Below, piece by piece: positions 2,998 through 61,508 of a stretch of DNA of 64,000 nucleotides (positions are counted from its first letter, which is position 1; each line of letters opens with the position of its first letter). The stretch is taken from IMG/VR virus record IMGVR_UViG_3300044701_003953, positions 124,001-188,000 of that record. One strand, written 5' to 3'. The notes beneath the pieces were generated by a model that saw nothing but the letters and a program-made list of their open reading frames with translations, was not told where the DNA came from and searched no databases. The translations under genes were made by a program, and so were the position numbers.

Positions 2998-3861
2998 TTA
3001 CTTGAAAGAGTTGTAAAAGTCAATGGATCTTTTTATTGAATCATTGGTTATTTTTTCATCGTACAAGTAAGTGACATGGACTCCAGTAGGTGACTGTTTT
3101 TTAAATCCGTGAAGCTCTTTACAATCCCAACAGTGCCCGGCACCTTCATAGATATGCCAGTCAACTTTGACTTTCTTTTCGATTACTTTCAGTGTCGGAA
3201 CGCAATCCTCGGGTGGTGTTTCTTTGTCATCGGACCCCATGAGCCATAAGACAGGGATGTTAGTGTCGTTGAATAGATATTTTCCGCCGCGGCCATAGTC
3301 ACATCCGCCATAGAGACCACCTACAGCCCGTGGCCTTAATCTACCATCGGCTACTTGTTGATAAACGTCTTGGCTAGCAGCAAGACCACTTACCATAGTA
3401 CCCAGACTGAGGCCAAAAGTGAAAATCCTATTTTTATCTACCCCAGGGATCTTGCTTAAATGTTCAACAGCATCGTACAGGTCTTTAACTAGTCGTCCTT
3501 CGGCTACTGTTCTATATCGAGACCCGCCGCAGTTTTTGCCAGCGTTGCGTGGTTGGTAATGATCGACTACCAATACAGTGTACCCAGCGTCAACGAATGC
3601 TTTAACCCACACTTTCAAATCATTTTCGGCCCGACTGTGTATTCCTGCACAGGCTGGTAATAGGACCATGCCCGGCCCGGGCTTGTTAGTTTTTGTGGTG
3701 GGCGAAAACACAGCGTTTCGTATAAACGACGAAGATTTAAATTCTTCAACTTGCGCAGAAAATTTTAAATCTTCTCCGATGGTTGCTTCTCGTCCATAAA
3801 AGGCTTCGGCCGGTGCTATGAATATCAGAGTTGAAAAAATAATCGCTAATGGTTTAATCAT
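2998..3861 (-). CDS. Exported dienelactone-hydrolase-family alpha/beta hydrolase
   Basis: Start at 3861 with AAGGAG RBS; signal peptide MIKPLAIIFSTLIFIAPAEA; GLSLG nucleophile elbow, GSDDKET and GAGH catalytic segments. Confidence 0.8.
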   Translation of the reverse strand: MIKPLAIIFSTLIFIAPAEAFYGREATIGEDLKFSAQVEEFKSSSFIRNAVFSPTTKTNKPGPGMVLLPACAGIHSRAENDLKVWVKAFVDAGYTVLVVDHYQPRNAGKNCGGSRYRTVAEGRLVKDLYDAVEHLSKIPGVDKNRIFTFGLSLGTMVSGLAASQDVYQQVADGRLRPRAVGGLYGGCDYGRGGKYLFNDTNIPVLWLMGSDDKETPPEDCVPTLKVIEKKVKVDWHIYEGAGHCWDCKELHGFKKQSPTGVHVTYLYDEKITNDSIKRSIDFYNSFK

Positions 3862-3871
3862 AGCATTCTCC

Positions 3872-5131
3872 TTAATGACGTTTAGCGGCTTCTTCGTAGT
3901 GGGCCCAGATACCAAAGGGTGGTTCGCAGTTAGGATTACCTTTGATGATCCAGACGGTTTCACAATACAACTCATCTCCCCAAGACCCAAACGGATAACC
4001 GTCTGTGAACATGATGAACTTTTTGGGTTCGATACCCTGTTCTTTCATGTAACGCCAGTTGGCATCAAAGTCAGTGCCGCCACCGCCCTGGGGCTCATAG
4101 GCCATGATGTCTTCTAGATTGTCGGAAGTGAATATCTGCGGATTGTAGACTTCGGTGTCGAAACTCCACACATGGATTCGATACTCGTCGTAACTGTCCA
4201 TGATACCTTTGATCTCGGTCAAGAACGCACGGATGTCCGATTCACCGATGGAACCTGATGTGTCAATACCGATGCAGACATCGATGGTCTCGCCGGGCTT
4301 CATGCCGGGCAGGATAGCATCGTGGTGCCAGCCTTTGCGGCTGGGACGAGCGAATGTGAAGTCGGATTTGATGGTGGAGATGATCTGTTGCTCCAGCAGT
4401 TCTTTCCAACCGATAACCGGAGCAGTGAGATCTTTGATCAAGCGTTTGACACCTGCTGGGATGTTGCCAGCACCTGCGGCCTGTGCCGATTGTAGCACAG
4501 CCTGCTTGATCTCGTCGCGGATCTGTTTGCGCTCTTCGTCGGTGAGTTTGGGGCGACCACCTTTGCCGTCCTTGTCACCATCACCTTCGCCTTCGCCATC
4601 ACCGTCCATGTGTTCGTCTAGGATCTGCTGGGCGAGTTGTTCGATGTCGATCTTGTCGGCGTTCTCCATCAAGTCGTCGTAGACTTCTTCGGCACTCATG
4701 CCCTTGTATTTGGAATCATAAAGGATGGGCACCACGGTGATGCGCTCGCCTACCCGCTGATCCAACAAGTCGGCGTTGACACAATAGTCGTCGGCGATGT
4801 TCCAGATCTTGGGATCACGGTCACCGCGTCGACCCATATGGTCATAGACAGCGTGGAGCACTTCGTGTCCGAACAAGAACTCGGTCTGCTTGAGCGGAAG
4901 GCTCTTGATGAACTGGGAATTGTAGTAGAACTTGCGTCCGTCTGTAGCGGCAGTGGGGCACCAGTCATCGGCGTTGATCAGCGTCATGCGGGTGGCCAGG
5001 TTGCCGAAAAACGGACTGCGGAGCAAGAGACCGATACGGGCAGTGACCAGTTTCTCGCGGGCCTCTGCGTCCACTTTGGGATCAGTGGTAACCTTGGATT
5101 TGGAACGTTCTGCTAGTGTGGTATCGCTCAT
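3872..5131 (-). CDS. DUF2201-like metallopeptidase + VWA domain protein (partner of MoxR-type ATPase)
   Basis: HEVLH (HExxH), acidic Gly linker, MIDAS DTSGS, GGGGTDF, FTDG. Confidence 0.88.
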   Translation of the reverse strand: MSDTTLAERSKSKVTTDPKVDAEAREKLVTARIGLLLRSPFFGNLATRMTLINADDWCPTAATDGRKFYYNSQFIKSLPLKQTEFLFGHEVLHAVYDHMGRRGDRDPKIWNIADDYCVNADLLDQRVGERITVVPILYDSKYKGMSAEEVYDDLMENADKIDIEQLAQQILDEHMDGDGEGEGDGDKDGKGGRPKLTDEERKQIRDEIKQAVLQSAQAAGAGNIPAGVKRLIKDLTAPVIGWKELLEQQIISTIKSDFTFARPSRKGWHHDAILPGMKPGETIDVCIGIDTSGSIGESDIRAFLTEIKGIMDSYDEYRIHVWSFDTEVYNPQIFTSDNLEDIMAYEPQGGGGTDFDANWRYMKEQGIEPKKFIMFTDGYPFGSWGDELYCETVWIIKGNPNCEPPFGIWAHYEEAAKRH

Positions 5132-5157
5132 TGGGTGCTCCTTAACTGTATATCTAT

Positions 5158-5186
5158 ATTATACAATAATGGGAATTATTGGTCAA
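5158..5186 (-). promoter_or_regulatory. Phage early sigma70-type promoter (conserved family, copy 1)
   Basis: TTGACC-17 bp-TATAAT followed by ATAGATATACAGTTAAGGAG. Confidence 0.85.
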
Positions 5187-5258
5187 CTAGGCGTAAGGCG
5201 TAAAATGGGGGACTTATACGCCCTGAATGCGATGCCCCCGGCCCGTGACGGCCAAACT

Positions 5259-6362
5259 TTACTTGCCTGATGCGGCGATGATGTATTTGCCGAAGCGACT
5301 GTGGAACTCGTCGAAGCTCTTCATCTTGCCGGGAACCATGGGCAGGTTGTAGGTAGTAAGAGCTACTCGGGCACCCATCACTACCAGTTCGGTAGTGAAG
5401 TTATCCATCATGAACCGCAGGAAGTTATCGGCTTGGGCATGCCAATCTGCGATCTTAGAGCCAGCCAACTTTTTATGTTGCTCCTGGAGCTCGTAGCACA
5501 TGGAGATCGTCAACGAGTACATCGCGGACACTTCCTTGACTTTGAGCTCTTTGACTTTGCCAGTGAGCACATCTTCGGGTTTAGGCATCTCGCCAGCGAC
5601 CTTGCGATGAGCCATGAACTTGACAGCGAGTCCTTCACCTACGGTGCCGGCGATCAAGTCAGTGAGTTCTGCGTCAGTGGCTTCGCCATCTTCTAAGAAC
5701 TCAGAAACGAACGTCCAAGAGCGTGGGGTAGCGAAAGAGCGGCTAGCCGAGCGAGGGTCAAAGTCCATCAAGTCTTGTTTGGCGAAGCTCAAGTAACCCA
5801 CCACGTCCTTGTGGATGTTCTTGTTCACAGCCCACTGGAACCAGGAATCAAAGTCCGAGCGCACTTCCAAGTGGACGAAACGGTTGGCCAACGGCGTAGG
5901 CATGCGATAAGAGATGCCTTTGTCGCTTTCGCGGTTACCAGCGGCCACCACCACCACATTGTCGGGCAGAACATACTTGCCGACTCGACGGTTCAGGATC
6001 AACTGGAACGCGGCACCTTGGACGGCAGGCACAGCCTGGTTCATCTCGTCCAAGAATAGCACGATGATGGGATACTGATCAGCCATCTCCTGCGTGGGCA
6101 AGTCGATGGGAGGCGCCCAGTCCATGAGCCCGGTGTCTTTGTTGAAGAACGGGATACCACGGATGTCAGTGGGCTCCATCTGGCCCAAACGCAGGTCGAT
6201 CATATGACCACCCATCTCGCTGGCGAGATCTGCGATCAGTTCGGACTTGCCGATTCCGGGAGGACCCCACAAGAAAACGGGTCGTTTGTTTTTAAAACAG
6301 CGAAGGACACGGCTACGGGTCTCGCTGGGGGTAACGGTACGATTTTCACTTACACTCATCAC
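5259..6362 (-). CDS. MoxR-like AAA+ ATPase
   Basis: Walker A GPPGIGKS, Walker B LFLDEMN, AAGNRESD, PLANRF. Confidence 0.92.
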   Translation of the reverse strand: MMSVSENRTVTPSETRSRVLRCFKNKRPVFLWGPPGIGKSELIADLASEMGGHMIDLRLGQMEPTDIRGIPFFNKDTGLMDWAPPIDLPTQEMADQYPIIVLFLDEMNQAVPAVQGAAFQLILNRRVGKYVLPDNVVVVAAGNRESDKGISYRMPTPLANRFVHLEVRSDFDSWFQWAVNKNIHKDVVGYLSFAKQDLMDFDPRSASRSFATPRSWTFVSEFLEDGEATDAELTDLIAGTVGEGLAVKFMAHRKVAGEMPKPEDVLTGKVKELKVKEVSAMYSLTISMCYELQEQHKKLAGSKIADWHAQADNFLRFMMDNFTTELVVMGARVALTTYNLPMVPGKMKSFDEFHSRFGKYIIAASGK

Positions 6363-6438: not shown

Positions 6439-6696
6439 TTAGCAGTATTCGTAGAACTTGACGCCGGGATCCAGCTTCAAGAGTTGATCGGCGCAACGGG
6501 CGAGGTTGCGGTAACGGGTTTGGACCTGCGAGCGGCTCAGTTCACCATCGCAAGTGAGGTTTTCAGGGCTCAGGGCAGAATCGATCTTGTCGGCGATCTT
6601 CTGGCGATCAGCAGCTGAGTTGAGATCTAGCGGACGCTGGCCAAATTTGGCGCTGAAACGGTTTTCTTGGTCCACGTAGTTTTTGAGTTCTTTCAT
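6439..6696 (-). CDS. Hypothetical early protein
   Basis: 85 aa, AAGGAG RBS and own early promoter. Confidence 0.75.
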   Translation of the reverse strand: MKELKNYVDQENRFSAKFGQRPLDLNSAADRQKIADKIDSALSPENLTCDGELSRSQVQTRYRNLARCADQLLKLDPGVKFYEYC

Positions 6697-6727
6697 TGCT
6701 GGCTCCTTTATTTAACTGTATACCTAT

Positions 6728-6756
6728 ATTGTAGCAAAATGGGAATTTTGGGTCAA
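6728..6756 (-). promoter_or_regulatory. Phage early sigma70-type promoter (copy 3)
   Basis: TTGACC-17 bp-TACAAT followed by ATAGGTATACAGTTAA. Confidence 0.85.
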
Positions 6757-6929
6757 CCACCCCAAAAAACGGGGTTTTTAGGTGTTGTTTTTATGCCACA
6801 ATAAAAATACCTGTTTCTGCTTGGATCGTAGCTGGGTCATAAATATATTGACGGCGCATGATCGATGGATGCCGGCAAAACACACATCGAAAAGACGCTA
6901 TCATCTAAAACTCCAGGAGAAATACAATA

Positions 6930-7898
6930 ATGGAAAAAAGAACTCTGCGTTGGGTACTAGCCCACGAACCAATCGAGATCTTCATCCGCGCCGCAGAAAA
7001 ATTTGCTAAATCCATCAGCGAGAAGACCAACGGTGCTATCAGCATCGAGATCATGACAGCTGAGCAATATGGCAAACAGTATCACGGTATGGAAAAGGTC
7101 GACACACAGTATCGTTACGATCTCATCAAGCACTTAGAAGCTGGTGAACTCGAAATGAGCCAGATGTACACAACCACATTAGGTACACATTATGACCAGC
7201 AACTGCTGGCCCTTGACATGCCTTACATTTTCGCTGATCACGATCATGTAGCTCGTGTACTTGATGGTGAAATCGGCGTTAGCCTCCGTAAGAGCCTCAG
7301 CGAGAAGACCAACATGGCTTCCCTGGCTTTCACATACTCGGGTGGTTTCCGCGTACTGCCTTCTGCTAAGAAGATCACAAGCATCACAGAACTCGCTGGC
7401 GAAAAAGTCCGCGTTGGTAGCCCTGTTTCGTTAGAAACATTCAAGGCCCTAGGTTGCGAAGCCGTTGACGGCATCAAAATCGAAGAGCTGGGCGAAGCGA
7501 TCGGCGACGGTCGTATCGTTGCTGGTGAATCCACATACCCACGCCTCTACGGTACAGAGCAGAACATCGCTCCTTCCAAGACTGCCAAGGCAGTCATCAA
7601 CACAGAGCACAGCCTATTCTTGACAACTATCCTGATCAACAAGGATATCTGGAATAGCTTCAGCGCAGAACTACAACAGTTCATGCTGGAAGCCGCACAC
7701 GAGGCTGCTCTGGAAGAGCGTAAAGAAGCACTGCTTGACATCCAGAAGAACCAGGCTCGCCTGCGTGCCGACGGTGTTGAAGTGGTTGATCTTCCTGCCA
7801 CAGAAATCGACTTGTTCAAGAACAAGACAGCAGTCGTATACGACGTATTAGCTGACATGTTCCCAGCTGGTCTGATCTCTAGCATCAAGAACGCCTAA
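6930..7898 (+). CDS. dctP: TRAP-transporter substrate-binding protein (DctP family), no signal peptide
   Basis: LALDMPYIFADHDHV, LAFTYSGGFRVL, LAGEKVRV motifs; AGGAG RBS; ATAAATA at 6839-6845. Confidence 0.85.
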   Translation: MEKRTLRWVLAHEPIEIFIRAAEKFAKSISEKTNGAISIEIMTAEQYGKQYHGMEKVDTQYRYDLIKHLEAGELEMSQMYTTTLGTHYDQQLLALDMPYIFADHDHVARVLDGEIGVSLRKSLSEKTNMASLAFTYSGGFRVLPSAKKITSITELAGEKVRVGSPVSLETFKALGCEAVDGIKIEELGEAIGDGRIVAGESTYPRLYGTEQNIAPSKTAKAVINTEHSLFLTTILINKDIWNSFSAELQQFMLEAAHEAALEERKEALLDIQKNQARLRADGVEVVDLPATEIDLFKNKTAVVYDVLADMFPAGLISSIKNA

Positions 7899-7915: not shown

Positions 7916-7942
7916 AAAAAGCCCGCTTATGCGGGCTTTTTT
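7916..7942. terminator. Bidirectional intrinsic terminator between convergent dctP and phasin genes
   Basis: AAAAAGCCCGC-TTAT-GCGGGCTTTTTT. Confidence 0.9.
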
Positions 7943-7959
7943 GTTGGCTGTGTAGCGTA

Positions 7960-8250
7960 TTACTCAGCGTCAGCTTTAGAAGCCTTCTTAGAAGAAACAG
8001 AAGGAACTTTGAAGAACTTGGTTAGGTCGAAATGAGTAGCCTCATTGATAGCCTTAACGCCTTCTTCTGTCAGACGTGTACCAACTTCTGTAGCGACCTT
8101 AACTGCGCTCTTTGTGTAAGCGGTCTGGCCGTCGATGAAACTATTCATGGCTGTCTTGATACCGTCGTGTTGTACGAAAGTGTTCACGAATTGCTTCTTG
8201 GCGTTTTGTACAGAGTCGATGTAAAAATCAGGGGTTGTATTGTAAAACAT
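7960..8250 (-). CDS. Phasin-like (PHA granule-associated) protein
   Basis: 96-aa amphipathic helical protein of phasin-like size and pattern (FIDGQTAYTKSAVKVATE); AAGGAG RBS; PhaR-like box upstream. Confidence 0.6.
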   Translation of the reverse strand: MFYNTTPDFYIDSVQNAKKQFVNTFVQHDGIKTAMNSFIDGQTAYTKSAVKVATEVGTRLTEEGVKAINEATHFDLTKFFKVPSVSSKKASKADAE

Positions 8251-8349
8251 TTTGCTTTCTCCTTAGGTTAAGCGAGTTAAATCGTCCCTTGACCCGCACC
8301 ATGCGGCATCTTGGGTTTACTGCATTCATTGATTGTAACATTACTTATA

Positions 8350-8363
8350 TTGCGGCGCAACAT
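8350..8363. promoter_or_regulatory. PhaR-like operator (TGC-N3-GCA inverted repeat) upstream of phasin-like gene
   Basis: TTGCGGCGCAACAT; inverted repeat TTGC-GGC-GCAA. Confidence 0.5.
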
Positions 8364-8465: not shown

Positions 8466-8747
8466 ATGGAAATTATTATCGCACTAGTAGTAATTGCAGC
8501 TCTTGGGTATTTCATTTTTAGAGGCACCGACGCCAACAAAGATGGTAAAGTGACTGTAGCTGAAGTCAAAGCAGTAGCAGACGTCAACAAAGACGGCAAA
8601 GTTGACATCCAAGATGTCAAGGCCGCTGCCACTAAAGCCAAGACCGCTGTGAAGAAAACAGCGACCAAGGCCGGTGCCAAGACCAAGGCTGTTGTCAAGA
8701 AGGCTACCACTGCTCGTAAACCTGCTGCCAAGAAAACAGCCAAGTAA
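8466..8747 (+). CDS. Membrane-anchored protein with two EF-hand-like loops and a Lys/Ala-rich histone-H1-like tail
   Basis: N-terminal TM helix; DANKDGKVT and DVNKDGKVD; AKKTA-type tail; AGGAG RBS, TAAATA at 8430. Confidence 0.8.
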   Translation: MEIIIALVVIAALGYFIFRGTDANKDGKVTVAEVKAVADVNKDGKVDIQDVKAAATKAKTAVKKTATKAGAKTKAVVKKATTARKPAAKKTAK

Positions 8748-59928: not shown

Positions 59929-60285
59929 TTAATCTAAACGGCTACCAGCATAAGCACGGAAACCATATTTCTCGAATACCTTCTGGGCCGCGTATGCGCC
60001 AGCCTCTTTGGTATCGACATTCTGTACTGGCATACCACTCGGGTCCCAGATCGAAAAACATTTTTTATAGTCTGAGCGGTCAACACCAGCGGCTTTCAAC
60101 ATCTTGCCTAATCGGGTGTTGCCTTTGATGCCATAGATATCAACCCAGGCGAAACCACAGGCATATTGATCTTGGCCGTTCAATTTCTCTTGGAAGAATC
60201 GATCAGCGGCTTTACGTGCGGCCACTTTGGCCTCGGCTACTATATCGTTGATTTGCTCTTGTGTATATTCCATAATCTGCTCCAA
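59929..60285 (-). CDS. Hypothetical early protein
   Basis: ACGFAWV motif; own early promoter and GGAG RBS. Confidence 0.75.
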   Translation of the reverse strand: MEQIMEYTQEQINDIVAEAKVAARKAADRFFQEKLNGQDQYACGFAWVDIYGIKGNTRLGKMLKAAGVDRSDYKKCFSIWDPSGMPVQNVDTKEAGAYAAQKVFEKYGFRAYAGSRLD

Positions 60286-60304
60286 TCTTTTACTGTATGC
60301 TTAT

Positions 60305-60333
60305 ATTGTAGCAAAATGGAAATTTCTGGTCAA
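60305..60333 (-). promoter_or_regulatory. Phage early sigma70-type promoter (copy 4)
   Basis: TTGACC-17 bp-TACAAT followed by ATAAGCATACAGT; spacer nearly identical to copy 3. Confidence 0.85.
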
Positions 60334-60338
60334 CCGGG

Positions 60339-61508
60339 CTATTTTTTGGTGAAAATATAGATTCCTTCGTGCTTGAAACCATTGGATTTTTTATTATTAC
60401 CTTGCCCTGGGCGCACATTCAACATCATCTTGATTTCACGTTGATACTGAAATCCACACTTTTCGCTTAATTCACGCCAGCGATCTACTATTTCAAACTT
60501 TTCTTTACCAGTACGATAATCTGCTATGTTTACAGCATATACACCATCATCATCAAGAGCACGATGGATCATATTAAGAGTGGGTTCTACATAGAGTTCA
60601 AACCAAGCGTCAAGATTGCTACAACGATTCATACACTGGGTAGGTTCGTCGCTATAGGTTTCAAGATTAAAATAAGGTGGGCTACTGAAAGCGGCCTGAT
60701 AAAATCCTGGTTCGGGATCAAAATCTTCGCTAGGCATGCAATTCATATCATATCCGTTGCCCTGCCCGCATTCGGTTAGAAGTTCTCCTAACGCTACCAG
60801 ACCTTCATAGGTTTTGGTATTTGGGTCGATACCTGTGTAATGGTATCTCATGCGGCTAGTCATGGCTCCCATCATACGACCGCCATATCCTGAACTGAAG
60901 TCTAATAGATTTCCAAACAATGTAGGACAGATATATTCCCACACCGCCCGAGCATTCATAGGTTTGAAATTCTGTATACTACCGCCTGATACCAAATCAA
61001 AGGCTCGACGCAGATTTTTCGGCACTACCGCCAAATCTCCTTCATCTCTATGTTTGTAACAGAGATTGATAGCACGACGTAGTTTATTGTCATTCATGAA
61101 TCTACCACGCAGACTGACCTCTGTATTGTCTCTGGTATATGCATCTTGAATGTTTTCGAACCAGAACCTGCCCAAGGTTAGTCCTTCATTGTTACCAACC
61201 TGCAGGATGCCATTGTCTATCCTTTTTTGTTGTCGGGCTAGATCAAATATGGCCTCCTGGCAACCTTCGAGATTGAAGTAATATATGGGAAGGATGTTCT
61301 TGTTGCGATAGATATCAAAAACTTCTTGTTCGATATCCTCCTTGCCAGCATCGTCTGCAGCCAGCCATGCTTCTTTGCTCAACTGATGCAATCTCGGCAT
61401 TTCAACTTCGTAGCCGGTACATATCTTATCCGTGGGAGTATAACCCCATCGTTGGCACAGTTGGTTGTAATAATCTAGTATTTTTTGATTAGTTGTAATA
61501 CTTGTCAT
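60339..61508 (-). CDS. Amino (N6-A/N4-C)-type DNA methyltransferase-like protein
   Basis: Motif I LLDFSSGYGG, motif IV FSSPPYF; probable start MTSITT at 61508. Confidence 0.75.
   Translation of the reverse strand: MTSITTNQKILDYYNQLCQRWGYTPTDKICTGYEVEMPRLHQLSKEAWLAADDAGKEDIEQEVFDIYRNKNILPIYYFNLEGCQEAIFDLARQQKRIDNGILQVGNNEGLTLGRFWFENIQDAYTRDNTEVSLRGRFMNDNKLRRAINLCYKHRDEGDLAVVPKNLRRAFDLVSGGSIQNFKPMNARAVWEYICPTLFGNLLDFSSGYGGRMMGAMTSRMRYHYTGIDPNTKTYEGLVALGELLTECGQGNGYDMNCMPSEDFDPEPGFYQAAFSSPPYFNLETYSDEPTQCMNRCSNLDAWFELYVEPTLNMIHRALDDDGVYAVNIADYRTGKEKFEIVDRWRELSEKCGFQYQREIKMMLNVRPGQGNNKKSNGFKHEGIYIFTKK

Follow-up and report, generated by a model that had tools for sequence, protein, structure and literature searches.

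A small gene of a freshwater jumbo phage lies behind a promoter that carries a site of the PhaR type, and this promoter follows the design of the phasin (phaP) promoter of its likely host group. PhaR (PhbF) is the repressor that senses PHB in the host, and it is therefore reasoned, on computational evidence alone, that the phage gene would be switched on only in cells that hold carbon-storage granules. The PhaR-type operator is well supported, whereas a phasin-like role of the encoded protein is plausible but unproven.

The locus was examined in a window of 64,000 nucleotides (positions 124,001 to 188,000 of IMG/VR record IMGVR_UViG_3300044701_003953), and all positions below are those of the window unless stated otherwise. 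The first-pass annotation had described a palindromic TGC-N3-GCA site about 100 nt upstream of a phasin-like gene, and had proposed that the phage gene reads the carbon-storage status of the host through PhaR and may coat or mobilise granules. The observation is correct: the site and the gene lie where they were placed. The interpretation is supported only in part, since the operator is strongly supported but the relation of the protein to phasins is not established.

Anatomy of the locus and its predicted promoter

The phage record has 207,520 bases and is estimated to be 59% complete, and the same protein also occurs on a 340-kb contig. The window carries a T4-type DNA polymerase, a Clp-like protease and many small genes, almost all on the minus strand. 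The palindromic sequence TTGCGGCGCAACAT lies at 8350-8363 on the plus strand, 100-113 nt upstream of the gene, and within it TTGCG-G-CGCAA (8350-8360) is a perfect 5+1+5 palindrome. The locus is a compact unit with the following features:

7960-8250, minus strand: gene for a 96-aa protein (10.6 kDa, pI 8) predicted as two helices, with its start codon at 8250; the only copy in the 207-kb record.
8350-8362, minus strand: PhaR-type operator box, TGTTGCGCCGCAA on the gene strand, with the core TGC-N3-GCA at 8351-8359.
8355-8360, minus strand: -35-like hexamer TTGCGC, embedded in the left half of the box.
8332-8340, minus strand: extended -10 element TGTTACAAT, 17 nt from the -35-like hexamer; the predicted transcription start is near 8325.
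8291-8310, minus strand: conserved, predicted 5'UTR stem-loop (GAUGCCGCA UGG UGCGGGUC).
8259-8276, minus strand: predicted hairpin that masks the Shine-Dalgarno (SD) sequence, in which CUCGCUU (8276-8270) pairs with AAGGAG (8264-8259), leaving a bulged G.
7917-7945, no strand assigned: bidirectional intrinsic terminator (GCCCGC TTAT GCGGGC flanked by A- and T-runs), read from the sequence and shared with the convergent DctP gene; subthreshold Rfam hits of the terminator type fall on this stretch.

The promoter is inferred from sequence, and the -35/-10 assignment is our reading, since a strict promoter scan did not list it. The same geometry is seen, however, in other sigma70-like promoters of this phage at 6736 and 60313. 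These two nearly identical strong promoters (6696-6760 and 60270-60340, both minus strand; TTGACC-N14-TGCTACAAT followed by ATA.G.ATACAGT and an AGGAG-type RBS) lack a palindrome and suggest a class of host-polymerase early promoters. A sigma54 promoter reading of the region was rejected by inspection, because the GG-N10-GC spacing is absent, and a general middle promoter like the MotA box of T4 was rejected because the phage record contains only one good site. No RNA run was found to contain the locus.

The divergent neighbour (8466-8747, plus strand) encodes a 93-aa protein with an N-terminal hydrophobic helix, two EF-hand-like calcium loops (DANKDGKV and DVNKDGKV) and a Lys/Ala-rich tail. 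Its 45-nt upstream block, which contains GTAAATACTA (reminiscent of T4 late promoters), is invariant in relatives. A variable stretch separates this block from the box, and the box therefore belongs to the 96-aa gene. The convergent neighbour (6930-7898, plus strand) encodes a DctP-type TRAP solute-binding protein (Pfam E = 1e-38) with no obvious signal peptide, and it is syntenic with the 96-aa gene in all close relatives. Further along, a MoxR-like AAA ATPase (5259-6362) lies next to a DUF2201/VWA-like metallopeptidase-type protein (3872-5131) within 3872-6362 (minus strand), with an alpha/beta hydrolase of the dienelactone hydrolase family at 2998-3990. All of these are conserved in the syntenic relatives. 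Outside the window, at record positions 116550-116574 (7.4 kb before the window start), a TTGCCTAGCAA palindrome lies directly downstream of a TGTTAGAAT extended -10 on the minus strand, but it scores poorly with the PhaR matrix described below.

Comparison of the box with host sites and its conservation

The bare motif occurs at chance frequency: TGCNNNGCA is found 15 times in the window against 16.7 expected, and TTGCGNCGCAA with one mismatch allowed is found 2 times against 2.15 expected. What exceeds chance is the extended site, its position and its conservation. On the gene strand, the site is an exact match to TG[N]TGC[N]3GCAA, the footprint-confirmed box of PhbF (PhaR) of Herbaspirillum seropedicae, which represses phaP1 and phbF and binds PHB granules (PMC3206438). 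The PhaR of R. sphaeroides uses CTGC-N3-GCAG (PMC3206438).

To compare the site with host boxes, Phasin_2 genes were taken from 29 Burkholderiales genomes sampled across the order of a Polynucleobacter MAG. TGC-N3-GCA occurs 50 times in the 260-nt upstream regions of these genes (28 of 29 loci), that is 6.6 per kb against 0.65 per kb in the flanking DNA, and the symmetrised extended consensus is T-n-n-TGC-R-n-Y-GCA-n-n-A. A matrix trained only on these host sites (exact TGC-N3-GCA sites upstream of Phasin_2 hits; training scores 3.4 to 24.6 bits, median 21.2) gives the phage site 17.5 bits. This is the best hit in the whole 207.5-kb record, with the next best at 10.8 bits. Taken alone this is modest and not significant genome-wide, since 2 of 20 shuffled genomes reach 17.5 bits, and it is the location of the site at the candidate promoter that matters.

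Conservation upstream of homologs had been named beforehand as a condition that could refute the reading, and the motif proved to be conserved. In 8 distinct orthologous upstream regions the TTGC and GCAA arms are invariant, whereas the central triplet is GCC, ACC, AGA, AAT, GGT or ACT. It is the most variable spot in an otherwise conserved block of about 100 nt, and it keeps R-n-Y in 7 of 8. The extended -10 is invariant or nearly so in orthologs. A wider scan of IMG/VR gave the best 80 of 180 confirmed loci, with family members at 37-86% identity on contigs of 5-352 kb. A box of at least 14 bits lies within 300 nt upstream of the family gene in 29 of these 80 loci (24 of 63 distinct loci), against 0 of 316 other ORFs in the same loci (Fisher p = 2.7e-21). 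Several of the boxes score 22-24 bits, as high as the best host sites. In another clade the box lies 500-760 nt upstream, at the head of an operon, and within 800 nt the count rises to 31 of 63. About half of the family loci lack a box. The distance from box to -10 is fixed, in that a TAnnnT hexamer lies 13 nt after GCA in 12 distinct loci, which is explained if TTGCAn doubles as the -35 element.

In many other phages the family gene sits in a conserved cassette of four genes headed by the box (individual family loci are designated by L numbers; L130:1854-3100, L128:1981-3018, L122, L126, L138 and L001:5480-6524). The order is a 57-59 aa protein (..ILERLAEMFP..YQSRLD..), a roughly 47-aa membrane peptide (..VAIDE.L....LGEEW.F), the family gene, and a roughly 90-aa protein (KLPEVKFNKNGYEIRT...PEFPG...AEKMY.FVN), so that the regulated unit is not always the family gene alone. 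None of the other cassette genes, which have no assigned function, was found in the 207-kb record of the present phage. Box-less clades contain degenerate versions of the box (L046:2074-2094; L001:5505-5530; L094-L100, about 830 nt upstream of the family gene): GGCAGTGCA with an apparent 3-nt insertion relative to the window site, TGCGGGTGCA (N4 spacing), and GGCACTGCG. These may be decayed or re-targeted operators.

The layout of the promoter also bears on the host, which is inferred. One orthologous phage contig was binned in a MAG titled 'uncultured Polynucleobacter sp.'. This MAG carries phaR preceded by an 18.3-bit box, and its GC content of 46% equals the 46.2% of the phage. All 31 genomes sampled from its genus have Phasin_2 genes (genus and order here are those of the MAG). 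Their main phaP gene usually has a single box near -95, for example ATGTTGCAACGCAACATAA, followed after 12 nt by TATAAT or TACAAT and a long leader. The design of one box, 11-14 nt, and TAnnnT is seen in 16 of 28 promoters of the genus, 0 of 29 promoters from the other Burkholderiales sampled, and 15 of 64 phage loci, and the extended flanks occur in 9 of 28, 1 of 29 and 7 of 64, respectively. Most other Burkholderiales have two boxes, one upstream of the -35 and one at the start site, bracketing a normal TTGACA/-10 promoter. The phage promoter thus follows the phaP design of one host genus in particular, which both supports PhaR control and points to a Polynucleobacter-like host. The DctP gene gave no host signal: it was not found in 40 other genomes of the genus, and the best identity in 300 Pseudomonadota genomes was 35%. 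The MAG itself contains several small contigs (C191, C73 and C94, including loci L050 and L051) with phage-type DctP genes (94%, 52% and 42% identity) that are probably phage, and it therefore holds binned phage DNA from more than one related phage.

The 96-aa protein and its leader

The protein belongs to a family of small proteins found almost only on viral contigs, with the conserved N-terminal pattern MF.(P)D..ID.VQ..KK..V.TFV ... FVDAQT.YTK. The family comprises 434 clusters (50% identity, E<=1e-3), all of 43-161 aa. Scans against Pfam, NCBIfam and PHROGs gave nothing above threshold. A tblastn search with three family members found no match among 50,697 cultured phage records, and blastn of the locus found only a short hit unrelated to this locus. 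Only two loci turned up in 185,579 species genomes, one on a 2.5-kb and one on a 70-kb MAG contig, of which the 2.5-kb contig is identical to one of the phage contigs.

The AlphaFold2 model is a two-helix hairpin (helices 6-25 and 29-79, pLDDT 75). Structure searches were uninformative: Foldseek against PDB gave no match at E<=0.001, and a search of the ESM-Atlas returned only unnamed viral clusters and generic helical hits. Sequence searches of PDB with two family profiles found only designed helical bundles and other noise. The predicted protein is amphipathic, with a mean hydrophobic moment of 0.31, like phasins (0.32) and above other phage ORFs (0.22).

Homology to Phasin_2 is not shown. 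Phasin_2 (PF09361; cut-off 24.9 bits) and the NCBIfam phasin models give no hit for this protein, and the best family member reaches E = 1.2e-4, below the cut-off. Phasin_2 is by far the commonest subthreshold Pfam hit in the family (24 of 135 members against 4 for the next family), and language-model neighbours include Phasin_2, PHB_acc and PHA_synth_III_E clusters. However, controls show that this similarity is mostly helical periodicity and composition. A phasin HMM scores reversed family sequences about as well as real ones, the alignment registers are inconsistent, hhalign gives 15.8-18.5 forward against 13.4-16.8 reversed, and there is no significant match to Polynucleobacter PhaP (P = 0.04-0.5). 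Only the global N-terminus-to-N-terminus alignment is slightly better than reversed (P = 0.003-0.014 against 0.4-0.6; in the best case 0.003 against 0.59). The protein thus resembles a phasin in physical character and in its inferred regulation, but not demonstrably in descent, and it is not classed here as a Phasin_2 member.

The leader (8245-8315, minus strand) gives a full-length but subthreshold match to the Rfam ROSE_3 RNA thermometer (RF02523), with 34 bits against a gathering score of 43. The stem-loop forms part of this match, and in 14 family 5'UTRs 5 of its 7 pairs show compensatory changes. The C[UC][CU]GCU-N(3-12)-AGGAG pattern of the SD-masking hairpin occurs in 14 of 62 distinct family upstream regions. 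The family locus L006 gives 27 bits and L044 gives no hit, ROSE_3 was not found in 61 Burkholderiales genomes or in the control genomes, and the predicted fold is no more stable than shuffled sequence (z = -0.57). A thermometer function of this leader is a possibility suggested by sequence alone.

Interpretation and comparison with known systems

PhaR represses phaP and is titrated by nascent granules, as described in PMC3206438 and the work it cites on R. eutropha and P. denitrificans. The most economical reading, to which we give a probability of about 0.6, is that the 96-aa gene is a stand-alone transcription unit with a promoter for host RNA polymerase (sigma70-type), a structured 75-nt leader, a strong ribosome-binding site and a terminator, and that the -35 element sits inside a 13-bp box for the PhaR of the host. 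In this view, free PhaR would sit on the box in cells without PHB granules, compete with sigma70 for the -35 and keep the gene off, whereas in cells that are making PHB, PhaR would be drawn onto the granules and the gene would be transcribed. The product would most likely act at the granule surface in the manner of a phasin, coating granules and perhaps favouring their mobilisation for phage replication. The site, its match to host boxes, its conservation and the shared promoter architecture are results of the analysis, while binding by PhaR, derepression by PHB and association of the protein with granules are inferred. Of these parts, a real PhaR-type operator is likely, whereas a granule-directed role of the protein, which is half the length of host phasins, remains tentative.

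Other readings were considered. The box could be a real operator for a different regulator, either a phage-encoded factor, such as one of the small cassette proteins, or another host factor with PhaR-like specificity, in which case the protein would have nothing to do with PHB. The cassettes headed by the box and the lack of demonstrated phasin homology are consistent with this, and the fixed box position at about -30 would also suit an activator that replaces the -35 contact. This reading is nevertheless unlikely, because phage boxes score up to 24.2 bits with a matrix trained only on host phasin promoters (whose own maximum is 24.6) and share the extended flanks and the box-to-(-10) geometry of Polynucleobacter phaP promoters. 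In addition, the 207-kb record has the box but none of the cassette genes and neither a PhaR (PF07879) nor a Phasin_2 gene, although the record is only 59% complete, and with one good site per genome record the box is not a general phage promoter class. That the palindrome is merely the -35 region of an ordinary early promoter that resembles a PhaR box by chance is very unlikely. The bare motif is indeed at chance frequency, TTG of the box is the -35 TTG, other promoters of the phage have the same geometry without a palindrome, and the whole promoter block, not only the box, is conserved among close relatives. However, the right half-site GCA(A) lies in the spacer, where sigma70 makes no base contacts, yet it is invariant while N3 varies, and boxes recur in distant phages with otherwise unalignable upstream DNA.

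A special case of the main reading adds common descent, in that the gene would be a strongly diverged and shortened Phasin_2 homolog captured from a Polynucleobacter-like host together with its promoter. The shared promoter architecture, the subthreshold Phasin_2 hits, the global alignment and N-termini that look alike by eye (M..TPEQ..AAQKAN.. against MF.TPD..ID.VQNAKK..) are in its favour, but no comparison reaches significance, local hhalign and HMM scores equal the reversed controls, the alignment registers are inconsistent, and the 5'UTRs of host and phage are unrelated. Common descent is thus possible but unproven. A broader reading is possible but speculative: a large family of uncultured freshwater phages may have copied the phasin promoter of Polynucleobacter-type hosts and may use PhaR as a sensor of stored carbon, so that a phage-specific class of small granule-binding proteins is made only in PHB-loaded cells. 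Within the four-gene cassettes the role of the protein would be to take over the granule surface and release the polymer as carbon and reducing power for phage replication, and the conserved SD-masking leader would add a second layer of control, possibly by temperature.

PHB is a major carbon and energy store in freshwater and soil bacteria, and how phages deal with it or exploit it is essentially unstudied. The shared promoter architecture gives a sequence-based clue to the host of a group of uncultured jumbo phages, pointing to Polynucleobacter, one of the most abundant freshwater bacteria. A protein family of 434 clusters without annotation would gain a testable function, and if the protein binds granules it would be a very small natural PHB-binding tag of possible biotechnological use. 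In the literature searched, no description was found of a phage-encoded phasin or of a phage gene controlled by PhaR.

The closest system is PhaR/PhbF with the phaP promoter in Betaproteobacteria (H. seropedicae, Cupriavidus necator; also the R. sphaeroides site). The box is identical in type, including the flanking T and A and the R-n-Y centre, it overlaps the core promoter (here a predicted one), and the gene downstream encodes a small amphipathic helical protein. In contrast, the present locus is on a phage genome, it has one box that contains the -35 where most Burkholderiales phasin promoters have two, and the downstream protein is not a demonstrable Phasin_2 member. The phaP promoter of the genus Polynucleobacter (28 genomes) shares with the phage a single box near -95 from the ATG, the extended flanks ATGTTGC...GCAACATAA, 12-13 nt to a TATAAT or TACAAT -10, a long leader and 44-46% GC. 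The host gene, however, encodes a 180-190 aa Phasin_2 protein, and the leaders are unrelated, that of the phage having a covarying stem-loop and a predicted SD-masking hairpin. Phasin_2 proteins resemble the phage protein in being all-helical, amphipathic and rich in A, K, T and Q, but no hit reaches the gathering score. ROSE RNA thermometers share two hairpins, the second pairing U(C/U)GCU with the SD sequence around a bulged G, but the phage score is below the gathering score and the downstream gene is not a small heat-shock protein. Finally, phage promoters that carry the operator of a host regulator are already known, such as pho boxes and NtcA sites in cyanophage promoters and phage genes controlled by LexA or Fur, and they let a phage gene follow the physiological state of the host. 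A phage promoter that reads the PhaR state would be a new example alongside the phosphate- and nitrogen-sensing promoters of cyanophages, differing from them in that the signal would be the presence of PHB granules.
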